A stretch of 64,000 nucleotides of DNA from Prasinococcaceae sp. CCMP 1430 (GCA_013416795.1 RQSC01000032.1:781397-845396), one strand, 5' to 3'. Shown: positions 2,044 through 36,438, counted from the first letter of the stretch. Notes: generated by a model not told the origin, from the sequence alone. Numbers and translations are program-made.

Positions 2044-5000
2044 ATGGTGAAGGCGTACCTGCGCTACGAACAGAGCGCACTTTGTGGCGTGGTATCGAGC
2101 GCGCGCGGTGGCGGCGGCGTGGCGTTCGCCGACGCGGACGGCGCGGCCGTCGCCGTCGCGGCGGTCGAGCGCGTCAACGTGTGGTCGGTGCGTGCAGGCG
2201 AGCTCGCCGCGAGCCTCGCGCAAGAGGGCAATACGAGCGGCGTCGGCGGGCAGGAGCGTCTTCCCGAGTGCACGAGCCTGCTCGCGCTCGCGGGCGCGCA
2301 CGCGCGCTCCGACCGACTGCTCATCGCGGGGTACGCCGATGGCCACGTCCGCGTGTGGGAGAGCGACGGCGGATGCCGGGCGCAGCTGCGCGGCCACCGC
2401 CGGCCAGTGACGGCGCTCGCCGGCTCAGCGGACGGCGCGGCGCTCGCCAGCGGCGCGGCAGACGGCGATGTGGTGGTGTGGGACGCGCTCGCCGATGCCG
2501 GCGTGTGCCGCCTCAAGGGCCATCGCGGACAAGTCACCTGCCTTGCGTTCCTTGAGGCGTACGGCGCGCACACCGCCGGCCGCGCCGGGTCGAGCGCGCG
2601 CGCAAGCACGAGCGGCGGCGGCAGCGGCGCGTGGCTCGCCTCGGGCTCGAAAGACGGCATGGTGCGCGTGTGGCACGTGGCGACGCGGCACTGCGTGCAG
2701 GTGCTGCAGGCGTGGCGCGGCGAGGTCTGGTCGCTCGCGCTCCATCCCGAGGGGGAGCGTCTGGTGGTGGGCACCGGCGACGAGTATCTGCGCCTCTTCG
2801 ACGTGGACGTCGCCGCGGGCGAAGCGCTCGCCGCGGCGGCCGTCGACGCGGACGCTGCGCTGGCGCGGCGAGAGGGCGACGCCGAGCCCGCTGCGGGCAC
2901 CAAGCGCAAAGGCGGAGGGGGCGACGGCGAGGACGACGGCGAGGGCGAGAATGGCGGTGAAGGTGAGCGGGCCGAACGCTTCCTCGGCGGCATTGCCGGC
3001 AGCCTGGTGGGCGCCGCCACCGACGTTGAGGTGCTGCGTGAGTCGGGTAGGTTGAAGCGCTCTGCGGCGGCGGGCACGCACCGGGCGAGCGCGCTCGAGT
3101 TTTCTGCCGATGGTCTGCTGCTCGCCGCCGCCTCGTCGGGCCGTCTGGTCGAGCTCTATCGCGTGCTCGACGGCGCCGCCGCGCAGAGGCGCGCGAAGCG
3201 ACGCGTGAAGCGCGCGAAAGAGAAGGCCGCCAAGCGCAAGGCGGCCCTCAAGGGCGAGCTCGAGTCACTCGCCGACGGCGATCCGCAGCTGGAGGAGCTC
3301 GAGGCGGAGCTTGCTGAGGCCGAGCGCGAGCTCGCGGAGGGCGTGCACGCGGTGGACACACTGCAGCTGCAGGCGGCGGTCACCACCAAGGCGCGTGTCG
3401 CGGGCGTGGCGTTCGCCGAGCCTGGCGGACCATGGGCGCCGAGGAAGGGGGGGACGGGCAAGGGCGATTCGAGCAAGGGCGGTGCCACGCAGCGGCTGGC
3501 GGTGGCACTCTCCAACAACTCGGTAGAGATCGTGCACGTGTCGCCACCCGCCGACAAGGGCGACGAGGGTGTGGAGCTCGCGCACACGCTCGACGCCGCG
3601 GGCCATCGCGCGGACGTGCGCGCTGTGGCGCTCTCCGCCGACGACCGCCTTCTGGTGACCGCGTCGAGCGGCCTGGTTAAGGTGTGGCCGACCGATGCCA
3701 AGTCCGGCGCACCGCCGACCGCGACCATGTCCTGCGGCTACGCGTTGTGCACGCTGGTGGCACCCGGCGGGCGCTTCGCGGTGGTGGGCACCAAGTCTGG
3801 CAGCCTGCAGGTTTTCGACCTGGGCGCCGCAGCGATGGTCGACGAGGTGGAGGCTCACAAGGGCGAGTGCTGGAGCATCGCCGCGATGCCCGACGGCTCG
3901 GGCCTCGTCTCAGGTGGCGCTGACCGTCGCGTGCGCTTCTGGGAGTACGCCGTCACGCAGCCGGCTGGCGGCGCCGCCTCGATCACGCTGCGCGAGTCCA
4001 AGTCCATGTCCATGTCTGACGACGTGCTCAGCGTGCGCTTCGGTGGATCCGGCGGCAAGTACCTCGCTGTCTCGCTGCTGGATTCGACCGTCAAGGTCTT
4101 CTTCGCCGACACGCTCAAATTCTTCCTCAGTCTCTATGGACACAAGCTCCCAGTGCTGTGCATGGACGCCTCGGACGATGGCGCGCTGCTGGCGACTGGC
4201 GGTGCCGACAAGAACGTGAAGCTCTGGGGGTTGGACTTCGGTGACTGCCACAGGAGCCTGTTCGCGCACGACGGGAGCGTCATGGGTGTGGCGTTCGTGC
4301 CACGCACGCACTACCTCTTCAGCGTCGGCAAGGACGGCTCGCTCAAGTACTGGGACGCCGACAAGTTCGAGCTGCTGCTCACGCTTGAGGGGCACCACTC
4401 GCAGGTCTGGGGCCTGACCGTGTCAAGTCGTGGCGATTTCGTGGTGACGGCAGGCGCGGACAAGTCGGTGCGACGCTGGGTGCGCACTGATGAGCCCTTC
4501 TTCATCGAGGAGGAGCGCGAGCGCAAGATGGACTCCCTCTTCGAGGCTGAGGGAGCGGGAGGCGGTGGCGAGGGTGCGGTGCTCGAGGGCGCGCTGGCCC
4601 CTGCCTCGAACCCGGAGATGGACGCGAGCCTCGCTGGCAGGCGCACGGGGGAGACGGCCGACGCCGCCGATAAGATCATCGAGGCGCTGGATATGGCGGC
4701 AACGGAGGAAAAGCGTCTCAACGAGGCAGCCACCGAAGGTGCGGACAAGGCCGGCGCGGCGAATCCGCTCATGCTGGGCATGGGTCCAGATCCGTACCTG
4801 CTGCGCACGGTGCGCTCAGTGCGTGCGTCGGAGCTCGAGCAAGCGCTGCTCGTGCTGCCCTTTGAGCACGCGATGCAGCTGGTGGGCTTCCTCGCGCGCA
4901 TGCTCCGTGCCGGCGGCGCGCACGTGGAGCTGTGCGCCAAGGCGGCGACAACCATCGCGCGCCTCCACCACGACCAGCTGTCGGGCGCGCACGCCGCACG

Positions 5001-5289
5001 CTCTGCGCTCGAGGAGCTGCGCGACGCCTGCCGGCCGGCCGCGCAGCGCCTGCGGGACACCATGGGCCTCAATCTCGCCGCCGTTCGCATCATCCAGCAG
5101 CGCATCGAGGCCGACCGCGCGGGCCTCCTCGGGGCTGCGGAAGAGCGCGTCGCGCAGCTGCGCGCAGCGTCGGCGCGCATGGCGGCGGTGGCAGCGGGCG
5201 GTGCCACACTTGGCACGAAGGCGGGGGCTGCCGCGGAGGCGACCAAGAGCGAGGCCGGCAGGCGCAGGAAGTCGCGCAGGCTCGCGTAG
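2044..5289 (+). CDS. WDR3: WD40-repeat SSU processome protein WDR3/Utp12/Dip2
   Basis: MVKAYLRYE start; many WD repeats (LRGHRRPV, LKGHRGQVT, FFLSLYGHKLPVLCMD, DFGDCHRSLFAH); C-terminal Utp12-like helical region. Intronless. Confidence 0.95.
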   Translation: MVKAYLRYEQSALCGVVSSARGGGGVAFADADGAAVAVAAVERVNVWSVRAGELAASLAQEGNTSGVGGQERLPECTSLLALAGAHARSDRLLIAGYADGHVRVWESDGGCRAQLRGHRRPVTALAGSADGAALASGAADGDVVVWDALADAGVCRLKGHRGQVTCLAFLEAYGAHTAGRAGSSARASTSGGGSGAWLASGSKDGMVRVWHVATRHCVQVLQAWRGEVWSLALHPEGERLVVGTGDEYLRLFDVDVAAGEALAAAAVDADAALARREGDAEPAAGTKRKGGGGDGEDDGEGENGGEGERAERFLGGIAGSLVGAATDVEVLRESGRLKRSAAAGTHRASALEFSADGLLLAAASSGRLVELYRVLDGAAAQRRAKRRVKRAKEKAAKRKAALKGELESLADGDPQLEELEAELAEAERELAEGVHAVDTLQLQAAVTTKARVAGVAFAEPGGPWAPRKGGTGKGDSSKGGATQRLAVALSNNSVEIVHVSPPADKGDEGVELAHTLDAAGHRADVRAVALSADDRLLVTASSGLVKVWPTDAKSGAPPTATMSCGYALCTLVAPGGRFAVVGTKSGSLQVFDLGAAAMVDEVEAHKGECWSIAAMPDGSGLVSGGADRRVRFWEYAVTQPAGGAASITLRESKSMSMSDDVLSVRFGGSGGKYLAVSLLDSTVKVFFADTLKFFLSLYGHKLPVLCMDASDDGALLATGGADKNVKLWGLDFGDCHRSLFAHDGSVMGVAFVPRTHYLFSVGKDGSLKYWDADKFELLLTLEGHHSQVWGLTVSSRGDFVVTAGADKSVRRWVRTDEPFFIEEERERKMDSLFEAEGAGGGGEGAVLEGALAPASNPEMDASLAGRRTGETADAADKIIEALDMAATEEKRLNEAATEGADKAGAANPLMLGMGPDPYLLRTVRSVRASELEQALLVLPFEHAMQLVGFLARMLRAGGAHVELCAKAATTIARLHHDQLSGAHAARSALEELRDACRPAAQRLRDTMGLNLAAVRIIQQRIEADRAGLLGAAEERVAQLRAASARMAAVAAGGATLGTKAGAAAEATKSEAGRRRKSRRLA

Positions 5290-30662: not shown

Positions 30663-30805
30663 ACAGCCATTGGCGAGGATTCTGAAGGGGTGAGCCTGGA
30701 CAAGCAACGGCAGCAGCAGCTGGCGCCTCCACTGCGGTCTCAGAAAGCAGCAAGAGTGCGCTTTCGCGCATGCGTCGCGTAGCCTCAACGCGGCGCCTGT
30801 GGCTC

Positions 30806-31759
30806 CTAGATAGAAGGCGCCACGTCAGCCTCTGCTCCCTGTCCCGCCCCATTCGCCGCACGAAGCTCCGCGTCGACCATGGCCAAAAGAAGACGGTAGA
30901 ATTGCTCGTTCGATCCACTGCCTTGGTGCATCACCGCCCCTTCCGAGCCGTCTCCCCACGGTCCACCATTGGTGTATTTCGCAGGCCCGTCGTGGTTGAA
31001 TACAAAGTAGGGGATCGAGTGTATGTGGTGCACATGTATGGTCTCCCCGTACGATTTCCACACCTCGTCTGCCAGTTCGTCAGTATCGAGCCAAGCGTCG
31101 AGCGCGCCAACGTCCAGCCCAGCCTCCTCGGCGGCTTCGAGGATCGTGGAGCGCTCGCTGGCGGACTTCCGCTCCGTGAAGTGGCGCTTGCTCAGCGCAC
31201 TCATGAACTCCTCCTGCTTGCCCTGGCGCGCGGCCCACAAAAGCGTGCGCTGGCTCTCCACTGGCTGCCACTGGGTGTACACATCGTAGTTCAGCGTCGT
31301 CCCTGCCTGCTCAGCAAGCGAGCGCATCTGCGACTCGATTGCGTCGCGAGCGCGCGGGTCGCCGCCGACGTACGTCAAAAGGCTCTCGTGCCACGTGCCG
31401 GGTTTCAGCCGCACCTCGGCGCCCGGCGGCGCGTCGGCGATGAAGCTGTACGGCCGTCGGCGCACGTCGATGGACAGGTACACATCGGGGCACTCCTCAG
31501 CCAGCCGCTCGAGGGCGTGCTGGATGTTGAGCTTCCCGATGTATCCGTGTGGTCACTGTGTGCATGTCACAAAATCGCCGACCAGCCGCACCTCCGTGGC
31601 GCCGCTGTTTGTGGTCGGGGGCGTGCGCGAGCCCGGTAAGAGGTTGCGCACGCGCTGGGTGGCCTGTGGGACGCCTCCACCGGCGGCGGCGGCGCACGCG
31701 GCGTCGCCGGCGCCGTCGGCGGCGGAGTTCGCCGCGACGTGGGGCACGGTCGTGGTCAT
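30806..31759 (-). CDS. FrnE/DsbA-like thioredoxin-fold selenoprotein (in-frame TGA at 31555-31553 read as Sec); 5' end uncertain
   Basis: EVRLVGDFVTCTQ-TGA-PHGYIGKLNIQHALE aligns to FrnE SDVVC-PWCYIGK; RPYSF and cis-Pro SIPYFVF downstream; the two ORF-track ORFs are in the same frame; SECIS downstream. Confidence 0.85.
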
Positions 31760-34700
31760 CAAGAAGGTCCGCGTGTCGCGCCGCGCCGCGCCACGCGGCG
31801 CCAAAAGTGCTCGTGTCGGGCGCCGCCACCGTATGGCGCATGCGCCCGCGCAGCTCCAGGGAACCGCCGCTGACGCGAGCGCGCCTCTGCCTCGAACAAC
31901 AGGACGGGTCCGATGGCCCCCAGATGCCTCTTGACGACGCTGGCGTTTACGCCATCGGCCGCAGCGACGAATGCGACGTGCGCGTCAACCGCGAGGGCGT
32001 CGAGGACGTGCACGTTGAGCTTATTGTCGAGGAGTACGCGCGCGGCGCAATGCTGTGCGCCATGGCGTCGGCTAATCCCGCTAGGCTCAACGACGCCCCC
32101 ATGGAGGGCGAGCAGAAGGTCCGCCTCCGCAACGGCGACACCTTCGAGGTCGGCGGCCGCCTCTTTCGCTACGAGACGGACGACACTGAGGAGCGCATTG
32201 CCGAGGAAGTCCTCGTGGCAAGCGCCAAAAAGAGTGCCAAGAAAGGTGAGCTCGCACCCAGCACCGTCCAAGGAGTGCCGCAGCTCTGCCTTGAAGCGCC
32301 CCATCCCACCCCCCGGTCCCCTCCCCGATCCCTCACTCAGACTTCGCCGGTCCAGCTGAATGTGCTGCGCGTGCTGACTTCCTAGCCTCCGCCAAACAAA
32401 CGCGTCTCGCTCATGCAGCCAAGCGCGTGTCGTTTACTTCGCCGATGTCGCGCAGCCCGCTTGGCGCCCACAACGCCAATCTCGCTGGCCGGCAGCCGAC
32501 GCCCTTCCGCAGTTCTTCGGCCAAGAGCCCGCTCAACGTGAGGAGCCCTATGACGCCGAAGGACAGCAACACCCCGAAGGCAAAGTCTTCAACGCCCAAG
32601 GCGGCCACCCCGAAGGCGGCCACGCCCAAGGCGGCCACGCCCAAGGCAGCCACGCCCAAGGCGGCCACGCCCAAGGCGGCCACGCCCAAGGCGGCCACCC
32701 CGAAGGCGGCCACGCCTAAGATGCCGACCCCCAAGGCGGCCACGCCGAAGGCGGCCACCCCCAAGGCGGCCACTCCGAAGGCGGCAACGCCCAAGAAAGA
32801 CCTAACCGAGACGCTTTTGTCGCCTGTTGCAGCTGTCGAAGGCGCCAACACGGCTATCTTCGAGGCTGACTATGGTGCGGATGATTTCACCAATGCTGTC
32901 TTCCCATCGATCAAGGCGGCCACCCCTAAGGTCACCACGTCCAAGGCGGCCACCCCGAAGGCGACCATCCCGAAGGCGACCACCCCGAAGGCGGCCACGC
33001 CCAAGGCGGCCACGCCCAAGGCGGCCACCCCCAAGGCGGCCACCCCCAAGGCGGCCACGCCCAAGGCGGCCACGCCTAAGATGCCGACCCCCAAGGCGGC
33101 CACCCCCAAGGCGGCCACCCCCAAGGCGGCCACCCCCAAGGCGGCCACCCCCAAGGCGGCCACGCCCAAGGCGGCCACGCCCAAGGCGGCCACCCCGAAG
33201 GCGGCCACGCCTAAGATGCCGACCCCCAAGGCGGCCACTCCGAAGGCGGCCACGCCCAAGGCGGCCACCCCGAAGGCCGCCACGCCCAAGGCGGCCACCC
33301 TCAAGGCGGCCACGCCCAAGGCGGCCACGCCCAAGGCGGCCACGCCCAAGGCGGCCACCCCGAAGGCGGCCACCCCGAAGGCGGCCACCCCGAAGGCGGC
33401 AACCCCGAAAGCAGCCACGCCTAAGGCAGTGTCCCCGAGGAGCCGCACGCCCAAGGCGGGGACGCCGACAGAGGTCGCTGTAATTGCGAATCTCTCCCCG
33501 GTGGTGCTGAATGACGTTGTCGAGGAGGGCTGCGAGGCCATCGTTGAGGACGTAGTCGACGTTGAGCAGGCGATGCCGGCCGCCTGCACGCTGGCTACCA
33601 GTGCAACAACCATGCGCTCACTGTCCACGTCTCTGCGCGCGGAGATCAATGCCAAGGGTGCAACGCCCACGCGGTCGACCCCCAAGGCTGCCACACCGAA
33701 GGCTGCTACCCCCAAGATGGCCACTCCGAAGACGTCAGCCAAGAAGGCTGCCGCTACGCCAAAGTCTGCGGCTGTGACCCCCGAGATCGCAGGTCTTCTC
33801 GACTCGCTGGTGGCCAGTGCGTCCAAAACCGGGCCGAGGAGCGCCGGTCGCCGTCGCAGCAGTGTCGGCAAGTTTGCGCTCGCCTCGCCCGTGTCGGCGA
33901 AGAAGCGGTCACTCGAGGACGAAGACATCGAGATGATGGAGGTGTCGCCGCCCGCGAAGCAGGCCAAGCAGGTGCAGCCCGAGGACGGAGCGGAGTCCGA
34001 GGAGGAGGTCGCTGAAGAGGACGCTGCCGCTCCCAGCCCAGTCGAGTTTGAGGTGCCCGCGTTTGAGGACGCTGCCGACGATGCGGCCGAGGATGCTTGC
34101 GAGGACGTTGAGGAGGCCGACGCCGATGTCAGCGCCGAGGTCGACGAGGCAGTAGTTAAGCCGGTCGGAGCAGTGGTCCGCATGCCGCGGGACCCGCGCG
34201 CGCTTCTGCACGCAGGTCTGCACAAGTCCAGCATGAACCGCGCCAACATGCGCCTCAAGGGCATGGTGCAAGATCTGGAGTCGAGGCTCGATGCAGCGCT
34301 CACTGCGCTTCAGCATTCCGAGAACGCGCGCGAGCGCGACGCGCGTCGCCTCGCCAAGGCGGCATCCAATGTCGCGCAGCTGCGCGCTGCCAACGCATCC
34401 CTGGAGAAGAAGCTCGCCAAGGCGAAGGCCGACTCAATCATCACCAAAAAGATTGCCCAGTACAAGGCCGACATGCAGATGAAGGCGATGATGGCAGCCC
34501 CCGAGATTGCCACAGCGCCCGCAGTTGAGCCTGCGGCCGTGACCGAGGAGGTGATCGTCGAGGAGGTCGTCGAAGAGGAGCCCGTCGCTGCCGCCGCCGA
34601 GGAGACCGATGAGGTGGTCGCCGAGGAAGTGGTCGCCGAGGAGGCCGAGGACACCGATGAGGTGGTCGCCGAGGAGGCCGAGGACGTCGAGGAGGCGGTC

Positions 34701-35402
34701 GCCGAGGAGGTCGACGAGGTCGAAGAGGCGGTCGCTGAGGAGGCGGTCGCCGAAGAGGCTGAGGAGGCGATTGTCGAAGTGGCGGTCGCCGAGGAGGATG
34801 AAGAGACGGCAGCTGAGGAGGAGATCGCCGAAGAGGCGATCGCCGACGAGCCCGAGCCCGAGGCCATGGATATTTCCATGGAGGACGTCGAGGACGTCGA
34901 GGAGTCTGAGGATGATGAGGTGGTGGTGAACAAGACCCCCACTCCCGCCAAGATCGCGCAGGAGATTGTCGTCCTCGAAGAATCAGACAACGACGCAGCG
35001 AACGATCAGGACGAGGTCGCCGACTCTGAGCCGCTCGAGGAGCAGGCTGAGGCTGAGGTCGAGACTGCTGTTGTTCAGAGCACGCCAGAGATCGTCGAGG
35101 TGGTCGCGGAGGCCGAGGCGGAAGGGGAAGGCGAAGAGGAGACTCCGTGCCTGGTCTGTGGCTCGTGCGACGACTCAGAGGAGATCATGCTTCTGTGCGA
35201 CGGCTGCGATAAAGCCTGCCATCTCTCCTGCGCGGGCTACAAGCGCGCACCCAAGGGCGACTGGTTCTGCATCGAGTGCAAGCCCACCAAGCGGGGCCTC
35301 GACGCCGCCGCCGCGTGGCGCAAGGCCAACGGCAAGGAAAACAACGCCGCGGAGGCCAACGCGGCGCCTGTAGCAAGGCGCTCTACGCGAAGCCGCCGGT
35401 AG
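31684..35402 (+). CDS. Ki-67-like protein: FHA, RVSF PP1 motif, TPK repeats, coiled coil, acidic region, PHD finger; exons ..31766, 31903-32245, 32419-35402; start codon not found
   Basis: Spliced [10 protein letters not shown]|[46 protein letters not shown] closely parallels the Ki-67 FHA; AKK|AKRVSF; C-terminal C4HC3 PHD ([33 protein letters not shown]). Confidence 0.85.
32553..33455 (+). repeat. 15-bp coding tandem repeat (AAGGCGGCCACSCCS-like, encoding AATPK) in two blocks
   Basis: About 16 TPK units at 32553-32796 and about 32 at 32914-33455. The variant MPTPK unit recurs with identical DNA three times. Confidence 0.95.
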
Positions 35403-35616: not shown

Positions 35617-35768
35617 TCACAGCTCCATCGCCTTGAGCGCATCCGCTGCGGCGCACGCGCCGTCGGCTGTGGCGGCTCGAGCTCTGGCCTCCGCCTCGGC
35701 ACGCTTCTTGGCGGCGTACGCCGCTCGCTTCTGCGCGAGGATAGGTACGCGCCGGGCACTCTCGAGTG

Positions 35769-35800
<32 letters not shown>

Positions 35801-36438
35801 GCGGGCGTCTCTGGAGTGCCGTCGACAGCCGCCGCGCGTGCTGAGGCATCCGCGGCGGCCACCCTCGCCCTGTGCTCCTCGGCGAGCAGCTCGGCCCCTC
35901 GGCGCGCCTCCATTTGTCGGGTGGTCGCCACTGGCGCTGCTGCTCGCGCGGGCAGGGGCGCGTCCACCTTCGCGCGCGTGAAAATTGCCCGCGCGCCCTC
36001 GACCCATGTCCCGCACGAGCACTTGGCGCCGGCAGACACGAGCGAGCCCACGCGCGCGCCGCACCGGGAGTTCGGGCACAGTAGGCGCACGGCCGCGGAC
36101 GGCTCCGCGTGCGTGGGCGTGGCCCCTGCTTGGGCCGCCCACTCAGGTGCGGACGTGAGGTAGTACACCGAGCAGTGCGCATGGCGCACGCCGAGCTCGG
36201 CGTCGAGCTCGTGGCGCTCGAAGAGCGCCGCGCGGCACTTCCTGCAGCGGAAGGTTCCGACCGCGGCGCCCAACCCAGCCGCTGCCTCCGCATCGCCTGC
36301 GCCGCCGTGGCCGCCGCAATGGCCCAGCGGCCGCGCTGCGGCGCGCGCCTGCTCCTCGGCGACGAAGAGCGCGCGCTCGCGGCGCGCAACGCGCGCCGCG
36401 GGCGTCTCCGCGAGGCGCGGCGCGCCCCCCCGAGGCAT
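35617..36438 (-). CDS. Stand-alone YVH1/DUSP12-type C-terminal zinc-binding domain protein with polyQ tail
   Basis: FRCRKCRAALF, HCSVYYL..PEW, LLCPNSRCGARVGS, GAKCSCGTWV..TRAKVD. No phosphatase HCxxGxxR motif. (CAG)n at about 35771-35799. Confidence 0.7.

Follow-up and report, generated by a model that had tools for sequence, protein, structure and literature searches.

For a long time, Ki-67 was regarded as exclusive to vertebrates. Homologues have now been described in a wide range of other species, among them a thraustochytrid, Dictyostelium, and Thecamonas; the criteria are an N-terminal FHA domain of the Ki-67 type, a protein phosphatase 1 (PP1) motif, a disordered sequence with repeats, the density of S/T-P sites, and a basic charge (Haider et al. 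2026, 10.64898/2026.06.18.733134). The same preprint considered an FHA protein of Ostreococcus whose best human matches are PHD fingers, judged its FHA domain to be without the residues characteristic of Ki-67, and reached the verdict "likely no Ki-67 homologue in plants" (10.64898/2026.06.18.733134). We analysed a 64,000-nt stretch of the genome of the green alga Prasinococcaceae sp. CCMP 1430 (GCA_013416795.1 RQSC01000032.1:781397-845396; hereafter the window), in which a model reading the DNA sequence had proposed a Ki-67-like chromosome-periphery candidate (hereafter the original prediction). The locus is a transcribed and spliced three-exon gene on the + strand, at approximately 31.7–35.4 kb, with a product of about 1,130 residues that combines an FHA domain of the Ki-67 subfamily, an RVSF motif, dense TPK repeats, and a PHD finger. 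We put at roughly 55% the probability that this protein belongs, as a divergent representative from the green lineage, to the Ki-67-like class of FHA scaffolds. The accompanying statement that no plant or algal Ki-67 orthologue has been characterised agrees with the literature, in which none is described and the preprint (10.64898/2026.06.18.733134) deems one unlikely in plants.

The FHA domain carries this reading. Exon 2 (31903–32245, + strand) encodes an FHA domain followed by a short helix; Pfam recognises the domain (E = 3.3e-8), its position in the protein is likely N-terminal, and by its sequence it is a member of the Ki-67 subfamily. In a search of all PDB chains, the human Ki-67 FHA chains 2aff and 1r21 were matched at E = 6e-10 and 7.4e-10, and the next match stood at 0.033, with Dun1 (0.53) and NIPP1 (2jpe, 0.72) weaker still; the domain is 32–34% identical to the human one over approximately 90 residues. 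FHA identities of the NIPP1, MDC1, DDL, and KAPP types were considered and set aside, each giving no match or a very weak one in this search. A HMMER pass over 1.84 billion representative proteins returned 226 matches at E ≤ 1e-3, and the best single-domain scores belonged to N-terminal, single-FHA proteins: the named ones among them are Ki-67 of Pelodiscus (a turtle), Ictidomys (a squirrel), Otolemur (a galago), Talpa (a mole), and Lynx, together with FHA proteins of a fish and, of a Ki-67-like kind, of an annelid, a copepod, and a beetle. Searching the ESM Atlas with the domain gave generic bacterial FHA clusters only, and a scan of JGI metagenomes with close FHA domains gave only weak FHA loci, by our reading mostly bacterial, and at most 35% identical over long matches.

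Two profile hidden Markov models (HMMs), both built without the FHA domain of the window, separate it from other FHA domains. It scores 116 bits on the wider profile, compared with at most 74 for FHA domains outside the Ki-67-type group, and 89.1 bits on a profile made from ten named metazoan sequences, compared with at most 55 for every FHA domain outside the group, the outside domains having been chosen for their similarity to this one. Both scores lie in the range of held-out members, and on the metazoan-only profile the protist members P0084 and P0117, the latter with a bona fide Pfam PP1_bind domain, reach 87.5 and 76 bits. A quick maximum-likelihood tree, from a short alignment, places the domain inside a 36-row group that holds all nine named Ki-67 sequences (SH-aLRT 87, a modest support). 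An AlphaFold2 (AF2) model of exon 2 (predicted local distance difference test [pLDDT] 89) has 2aff and 1r21 as its best Foldseek matches (TM score 0.8, root-mean-square deviation 1.6), although the fold match adds little because other FHA domains come close behind and Ki-67-type sequences had supplied the input alignment. The likeness to human Ki-67 seen in the original prediction is thus borne out by PDB search, profiles, tree, and fold match, and the profile searches and the quick tree group the domain with Ki-67 and not with an unrelated FHA family.

The junction between exons 2 and 3 is present in RNA. Four RNA-type runs were aligned to 30700–32590 (1,891 letters), and in one contig (X1 record 2) positions 32052–32243 are joined directly to 32417–32590; after a +2 shift of the alignment coordinates, the skipped stretch is 32246–32418, exactly the 173-nt GT..AG intron 2 that had been proposed from the sequence. 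The junction SAKK|AKRVSF is therefore transcribed, and splicing does bring KKAKRVSF into the protein, the outcome on which a check by RNA had been asked for. Exon 3 (32419–35402, + strand), covered by the same contig at 32417–32590, is a single open frame to the stop codon at 35400–35402; its in-frame codons (32421–35399) correspond to spliced residues 138–1130 and were the reference for searches.

Upstream, the 3' part of exon 1 (31701–31766, + strand) would encode beta-strand 1 of the FHA domain, and the inferred 136-nt intron 1 (31767–31902; GT..AG, GTCCGC..AACAG) would join frame 0 to the frame of exon 2. The consensus of the relatives, G-x-[IV]-V-V-I-[KR]-x-[ND]-G-x-D-G, fits the stretch encoded by exon 1. 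Its inclusion adds approximately 10 bits to each pairwise match with Ki-67-type FHA domains, compared with 2–6 bits for an unspliced alternative beginning at ATG 31840. The wider profile gives 116.0 bits with exon 1, 102.6 with the ATG 31840 alternative, and 99.0 with exon 2 alone, and the metazoan-only profile 89.1, 77.4, and 74.7, so that exon 1 gains 14–17 bits across both profiles and the alternative approximately 3. A 99.2% identical relative on a Tara Oceans scaffold (L002) differs at eight of 956 positions: one in exon 1 (31739 G>A) and three in exon 2, all synonymous; one in exon 3, changing Pro to Ala; and three within the two introns, two of them in intron 1. Homology and polymorphism together point to exon 1 and intron 1 as drawn. 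No match to the spliced exon 1/2 junction was found among JGI metagenome contigs, and protein searches, within a restricted length range, found no annotated protein of the same genome.

Two other 5' ends were rejected. A start at ATG 31840 without intron 1 adds only the approximately 3 bits mentioned, and this codon is ATC in L002. A start at ATG 31564 with a 92-nt intron (31636–31727) is in frame and has a good 5' site but a poor 3' one; it runs antisense to the coding sequence of a FrnE/DsbA-like gene, and RNA contigs X2 and X4 cross 31635/6 unspliced. Position 31684, at which the original prediction let the gene begin, holds no start codon.

KRVSF (32421–32435, + strand; spliced residues 138–142) matches the core of an RVxF-type PP1-docking motif, with Ser at the x position, and no other stretch of the protein fits the RVxF pattern. 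The RVSF core lies approximately 25 residues past the FHA domain; it starts at residue 139, compared with residue 147 in two shorter database entries of Ki-67 (P0089 and P0148). When the residues after the FHA domain were shuffled, 1.2% of trials (0.012) placed an RVxF motif within the first 60 residues, and 0.18% (0.0018) yielded [RK][RK]V[ST]F at any position, so that the occurrence of RVSF by chance is unlikely. Two homologues described below have related motifs, L003 with KSVSF and P0001 with KSVKF.

Three blocks of AATPK pentapeptides follow (32592–32798, 32913–33467, and 33660–33779, spanning 32592–33779 on the + strand), with two non-repeat acidic spacers between them. Tandem Repeats Finder reports a 15-nt period in 54.7 copies at 32592–33427; there are 43 AATPK units, and the array covers approximately 300 residues. 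The protein contains 61 TP and 11 SP sites, 72 S/T-P sites in all or one per 15.7 residues, and 53 TPK. Residues 138–640, with 57 of the TP sites, carry a net charge of +59 at an isoelectric point (pI) of 10.6. Within the array, there are three recurrences of KMPTPK variants, and long copies at the DNA level are spaced by 150 nt (e.g., at 33132 and 33282), a structure that suggests recent unequal crossing-over; the Tara scaffold L002 ends inside the array. The repeats give way to a first acidic tract (residues 645–716, 33942–34157, + strand; net −24), a candidate coiled coil that AF2 predicts from the single sequence as one 89-residue helix (residues 740–828, 34227–34493, + strand; pLDDT 92–94), and a second acidic tract (residues 845–1045, 34542–35144, + strand; net −85) with imperfect 9–48-nt repeats. 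Low AF2 confidence in the C-terminal acidic parts is a partial gauge of disorder. Both the coiled coil, as a candidate, and the acidic tract of the original prediction are therefore recovered, the latter as two tracts.

The PHD finger (35148–35279, + strand), another element that had been read from the sequence, is confirmed by Pfam (E = 3.9e-6) and by its Cys4-His-Cys3 ligands. Its closest matches in the PDB are BAZ2A (1.1e-11), BAZ2B (4.8e-10), and KDM5B PHD1 (4.9e-8), and further ones are KAT6A, BRD1/BRPF1, KDM5A, ATXR5, CHD4, AIRE, and PHF21A. PHD fingers of the BAZ2A/KDM5 type are readers of the unmodified H3 tail (H3K4me0). Like the BAZ2A/BAZ2B and KDM5 PHD1 fingers, the algal finger is without the aromatic-cage Trp at its usual place, as read from the alignment, and it probably reads the unmodified H3 tail as well. 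The proteins that host those fingers differ from this one. A basic tail (35280–35399, + strand) completes the protein and ends in RRSTRSRR (35376–35399). P0001/P0157, P0084, P0117, and P0020 close with this tail or with one like it, and the vertebrate Ki-67 sequences retrieved end in ..RARTRSRR, ..LRSRSHRHREDI, and ..MRTRSCRDHRDV (motifs RTRSRR, RSRSHR, and RTRSCR). An Arg-rich motif of the form R-[RST]-[ST]-R-[ST]-x-R stands at or near the extreme C-terminus of P0084, P0117, P0020, P0001, P0157, P0139, P0089, P0126, and this protein; we take it to resemble the "arginine anchor" for the nucleosome acidic patch, as in RRSARLSA of HMGN.

Vertebrate Ki-67 (MKI67) and the algal protein thus share an N-terminal FHA domain of the same subfamily, an RVSF core after it, S/T-P-rich tandem repeats (one S/T-P per 26–50 residues in the retrieved Ki-67 sequences), and, at the extreme C-terminus, an Arg-rich motif of the R-[ST]-R-S-x-R type. 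They differ in size (approximately 2,600–3,250 residues in vertebrates, approximately 1,130 here) and in the length of the repeats (approximately 122 residues as opposed to five). Vertebrate Ki-67 further has an extended PP1 motif and an LR domain, whereas the alga has a PHD finger, an acidic pI overall, and a Ser-to-Glu change in the FHA domain. Ki-67-like proteins of non-vertebrates and protists (P0117, P0084/P0170, P0168, P0020, and P0141 of Owenia) belong to the same FHA clade and likewise have an N-terminal FHA domain, RVSF or PP1_bind, S/T-P-rich repeats (containing AATPK in Owenia), acidic stretches, and a C-terminal chromatin or DNA module with an RRS[ST]R tail. The module itself is SAP or no recognisable domain in those proteins and a PHD finger here. 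P0084, P0117, and P0168 carry SAP domains rather than PHD fingers, together with RVSF or PP1_bind, and the SAP-bearing members end in RRSTRRR, RRSSRRSTRAGK, or TRRSSRK; P0117 combines FHA, Pfam PP1_bind, SAP, and an RRSSRRSTR tail, and P0084 FHA, RVSF, SAP, and an RRSTRRR tail. The partial sequence P0141, from the annelid Owenia fusiformis, has a Ki-67-type FHA domain and then a repeat with AATPK, almost the same pentapeptide as in the alga.

The relative with the nearest FHA domain (39%) comes from a 5.9-kb contig of a GC-rich marine eukaryote (L003, ENA ERZ27280190). It has a Ki-67-type FHA exon with its own ATG, an intron, and then a 1,284-codon exon. Encoded in the latter are repeats of approximately 70 residues with TP and RRRKSS, after which come GRKSVSF, a run of Glu, a PHD finger that Pfam recognises (3.5e-4), and a long basic tail. 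Like the gene of the window, L003 consists of an FHA exon, an intron, and one long exon, and has TP repeats, KSVSF, a Glu run directly before the PHD finger, and an Arg-rich basic tail; unlike it, L003 has the longer repeats, the canonical FHA Ser, a longer tail after the PHD finger, and, in addition to the ATG of the FHA exon, no intron after beta-strand 1. Since L003 shares the layout of FHA, repeats, KSVSF, acidic run, and PHD finger, the combination of a Ki-67-type FHA domain with a PHD finger is not a one-off.

A second set of relatives shares the other end of the protein. The P0001 group (P0001–P0003, P0157, and P0158) comprises FHA-PHD proteins of approximately 1,000 residues that are abundant in marine assemblies. 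Their PHD finger and tail match those of the algal protein at E = 1.3e-17 and 5.9e-18, they end in PV.RRSTRSR[KR], they have a coiled-coil-like helix and an acidic tract ahead of the PHD finger, and their motif KSVKFxEGLSDSPL resembles the algal stretch at KRVSF. Their FHA domain, however, is not of the Ki-67 type: it matches the algal one pairwise at E = 0.002 to 1.2, scores 23–42 bits on the Ki-67 profiles, and in the PDB is nearest to PNKP, Rad53, and CHFR (approximately 2e-3), with Ki-67 at 0.8. Their repeats (..ATPSWQHAFVKELEK..) also differ from AATPK. In P0001–P0003 and P0157 the repeat region reads ..PHIMATPSWQHAFVKELEK..; its F-[VK]-x-E-L core, in our view, is reminiscent of FKEL, the "Ki-67 motif" in the repeats of vertebrates, a likeness that could be due to chance. 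The group is possibly the kind of protein that, in Ostreococcus, was dismissed as a Ki-67 homologue (10.64898/2026.06.18.733134).

Several observations weigh against a Ki-67-like identity. Among the features of the family, the algal protein shows a Ki-67-subtype FHA domain, a downstream RVxF motif, and S/T-P-rich tandem repeats, and lacks the extended PP1 motif, an overall basic charge, and the LR domain. The extended motif of Ki-67 and RepoMan (RVSF-G-x-x-L-x-PE-x-FD-x-x-LPP), present in vertebrate Ki-67, P0196, and P0117, was sought with a profile of our own, built from Ki-67, P0196, P0117, and P0084, which gave −0.6 bits on the spliced protein, and with Pfam PF15276 (PP1_bind), which found no match on exon 3 at E ≤ 1 with a query starting at the K of KRVSF. 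The comparison with RRRVSF of Ki-67 that had been drawn from the sequence consequently stands for the RVSF core after the FHA domain and fails for the extended motif. None of our searches found Ki-67 similarity, and hence an LR domain, past the FHA domain; the C-terminus is PHD finger and basic tail, and its sole likeness to Ki-67 tails is the short Arg-rich motif at the end. The whole protein has a pI of 4.9 and a net charge of −46, whereas Ki-67 homologues are described as basic (10.64898/2026.06.18.733134). The approximately 50 TPK kinase sites of the original prediction are there in number but are minimal S/T-P sites, TPKA being without the +3 basic residue of the full cyclin-dependent kinase (CDK) consensus S/T-P-x-K/R. 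As had also been noticed, and as the alignment confirms, the phosphate-binding Ser of the FHA SxxH motif is replaced by Glu (VEDVH); the Gly-Arg, His, and Asn positions are conserved, and the same position holds Glu in the beetle homologue P0025 and Lys in P0050. Intron 1, for its part, keeps the support of homology and the L002 polymorphism but not that of RNA, the depth being 0 at 31724–32043 in the four RNA-type runs, and no in-frame ATG occurs in exon 1 between 31539 and 31766. Finally, since the P0001 group shares the PHD finger and tail and is without the Ki-67-type FHA domain, domain shuffling is possible.

These points lend themselves to a different account, in which the protein is a generic FHA-PHD chromatin regulator acting, for instance, in transcription or DNA-damage signalling, by analogy an MDC1-like scaffold with an N-terminal FHA domain, phospho-repeats, and a reader of histone marks at the C-terminus, that gained or kept a Ki-67-type FHA domain through domain shuffling, so that any likeness to Ki-67 beyond that domain would be convergent or coincidental. 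A PHD finger and tail held in common with P0001/P0157 (E = 1e-17), whose FHA domain is of another type, would be expected under this account, which is also favoured by the undetected extended PP1 motif, the acidity of the whole protein, and the rejection of the Ostreococcus FHA-PHD protein as a Ki-67 homologue in the preprint (10.64898/2026.06.18.733134). It has to contend, however, with the large gap in score between the algal FHA domain and all other FHA domains tested, and with the absence of any MDC1 or DNA-damage FHA match at E < 10 in the PDB, save the weak one to Dun1 (0.53). It must also accommodate the co-occurrence of RVSF after the FHA domain, dense TP repeats, and an Arg-rich tail in other proteins with a Ki-67-type FHA domain, and L003, which has the whole layout with such a domain. 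We therefore consider a generic FHA-PHD regulator unlikely, though it is the strongest of the competing explanations, and prefer a Ki-67-like scaffold.

As a Ki-67-like scaffold, the protein might work as follows. Binding of the H3 tail by the PHD finger, together with the RRSTRSRR tail, would anchor the C-terminus on chromatin, in which case the PHD finger may stand in for the LR domain. The basic TPK region could serve as a charge switch: once fully phosphorylated by a mitotic kinase of the proline-directed kind, it would pass from a net charge of approximately +59 to a negative one, and only residues 138–640 are basic, so that no other part of the protein could change sign in this way. PP1 docked at RVSF would undo the phosphorylation of TPK at mitotic exit, and the Ser within RVSF could gate this docking, as in Ki-67. 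Ki-67 binds NIFK through its FHA domain, by way of a phospho-Thr and of a beta-strand placed on beta 4, and locates to the surface of mitotic chromosomes or to nucleoli. With its phosphate-binding Ser replaced by Glu, the algal FHA domain probably acts as a protein-binding module whose recognition of phosphothreonine is weakened or altered. The whole protein would then coat or space chromatin under the control of phosphorylation, in analogy with Ki-67, and by that analogy it may have a function at the chromosome periphery.

The repeats admit another interpretation. S/T-P-K-K repeats occur in sperm histones, and S/T-P-K/R-K/R motifs are minor-groove binders; by extension, the AATPK repeats might bind DNA directly and compact chromatin in the manner of an H1-like SPKK-type DNA-binding protein and be released by phosphorylation, with the FHA domain and RVSF as accessories. 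An AATPK array of approximately 300 residues within a region of pI 10.6 would suit such a role, as would the minor-groove binding of S/T-P-K/R-K/R motifs in general. TPKA, however, is without the second basic residue of SPKK, Pfam detects no linker-histone globular domain, and the acidic half, at a net charge of approximately −100, would oppose DNA binding. We regard an H1-like identity as quite improbable; it is in any case compatible with a Ki-67-like scaffold and does not exclude it.

In NIPP1 (PPP1R8), an FHA domain likewise precedes an RVxF motif, in a protein without repeats, acidic tracts, or PHD finger. That the algal protein is a nuclear PP1 regulator of this kind, its FHA domain recruiting phosphoproteins and its RVxF motif holding PP1, is very improbable: the shared order of the two elements and the annotation of an Arabidopsis FHA protein as a nuclear inhibitor of PP1 (10.64898/2026.06.18.733134) speak for it, but the NIPP1 FHA domain (2jpe) is matched at E = 0.72 compared with 6e-10 for Ki-67, and the repeats, acidic tracts, and PHD finger have no counterpart in NIPP1.

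How far the relationship with Ki-67 extends can be stated at two levels. Common descent of the FHA subfamily we rate much higher than orthology; that the gene is a true Ki-67 orthologue in Viridiplantae, with a similar function, is a tentative proposal that we hold to be somewhat doubtful, the alternative being that a shared FHA type was built into a lineage-specific assembly. Because the algal protein clearly has the FHA domain called for in a Ki-67 homologue, it extends and partly contradicts the conclusion on plants reached in the preprint (10.64898/2026.06.18.733134), and it suggests that algal FHA-PHD proteins may be relatives of Ki-67. Prasinodermophyta branches before Chlorophyta and Streptophyta diverge (PMC7455551), and a protein with a Ki-67-type FHA domain in this deepest-branching phylum of green plants pushes the origin of the family deeper. 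If the gene is a true orthologue, the Ki-67 module (FHA domain, PP1 dock, CDK-switchable repeat brush, and chromatin anchor) would be older than the divergence of Archaeplastida from animals and fungi. In that case, the dismissed FHA-PHD proteins of other green algae would descend from it in derived form, the brush would be anchored in the green lineage by a PHD finger that reads the H3 tail rather than by an LR domain, and the question of what organises the plant chromosome periphery would be opened. The protein is a concrete green-lineage candidate for a chromosome-coating or chromatin-spacing protein, and its layout of a switchable basic half, an acidic half, and a histone-reading anchor would let the "surfactant" model of Ki-67 be tested on a compact natural example.

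Divergently oriented from the FHA-PHD gene, a FrnE/DsbA-like gene lies on the minus strand (30806–31702). It has an in-frame TGA (31553–31555 in + coordinates) in an active-site context, ..DFVTCTQ[TGA]PHGYIGK..; the gene is covered by RNA contigs, and its only in-frame ATG (31759–31757) is antisense to FHA exon 1. In one RNA contig (X1 record 1), colinearity with the genome holds over 30700–31702, after which come 87 nt, starting AGCACGCGCGGCCATGG, that have no match anywhere in the 64-kb window. This end probably reflects a chimeric contig at a (GGC)n run, or else an unusual splice; in the Tara scaffold L002, colinearity continues through 31702/31703. On the other side, tail to tail with the FHA-PHD gene, a minus-strand open reading frame (35617–36438) lies directly downstream, its product having CxxC motifs in pairs and 11 consecutive Gln.

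The GC content of the window is approximately 69%, in agreement with the 69.8% published for Prasinoderma coloniale. An intronless WDR3/Utp12 gene (2044–5289) falls into a cluster at ≥90% identity (99% for the cluster's match) with the EukProt sequence PRCOL_00001463 of Prasinoderma_coloniale, so that the genome is that of P. coloniale or of a very close relative, which bears out the premise that the host is a green alga and places it in the Prasinodermophyta lineage (PMC7455551). The next named relative of this WDR3 is from a chlorophycean alga, at 38%, and a further relative, at 66% identity, occurs widely across the Tara metagenomes (L005–L014), pointing to an unsequenced sister lineage.

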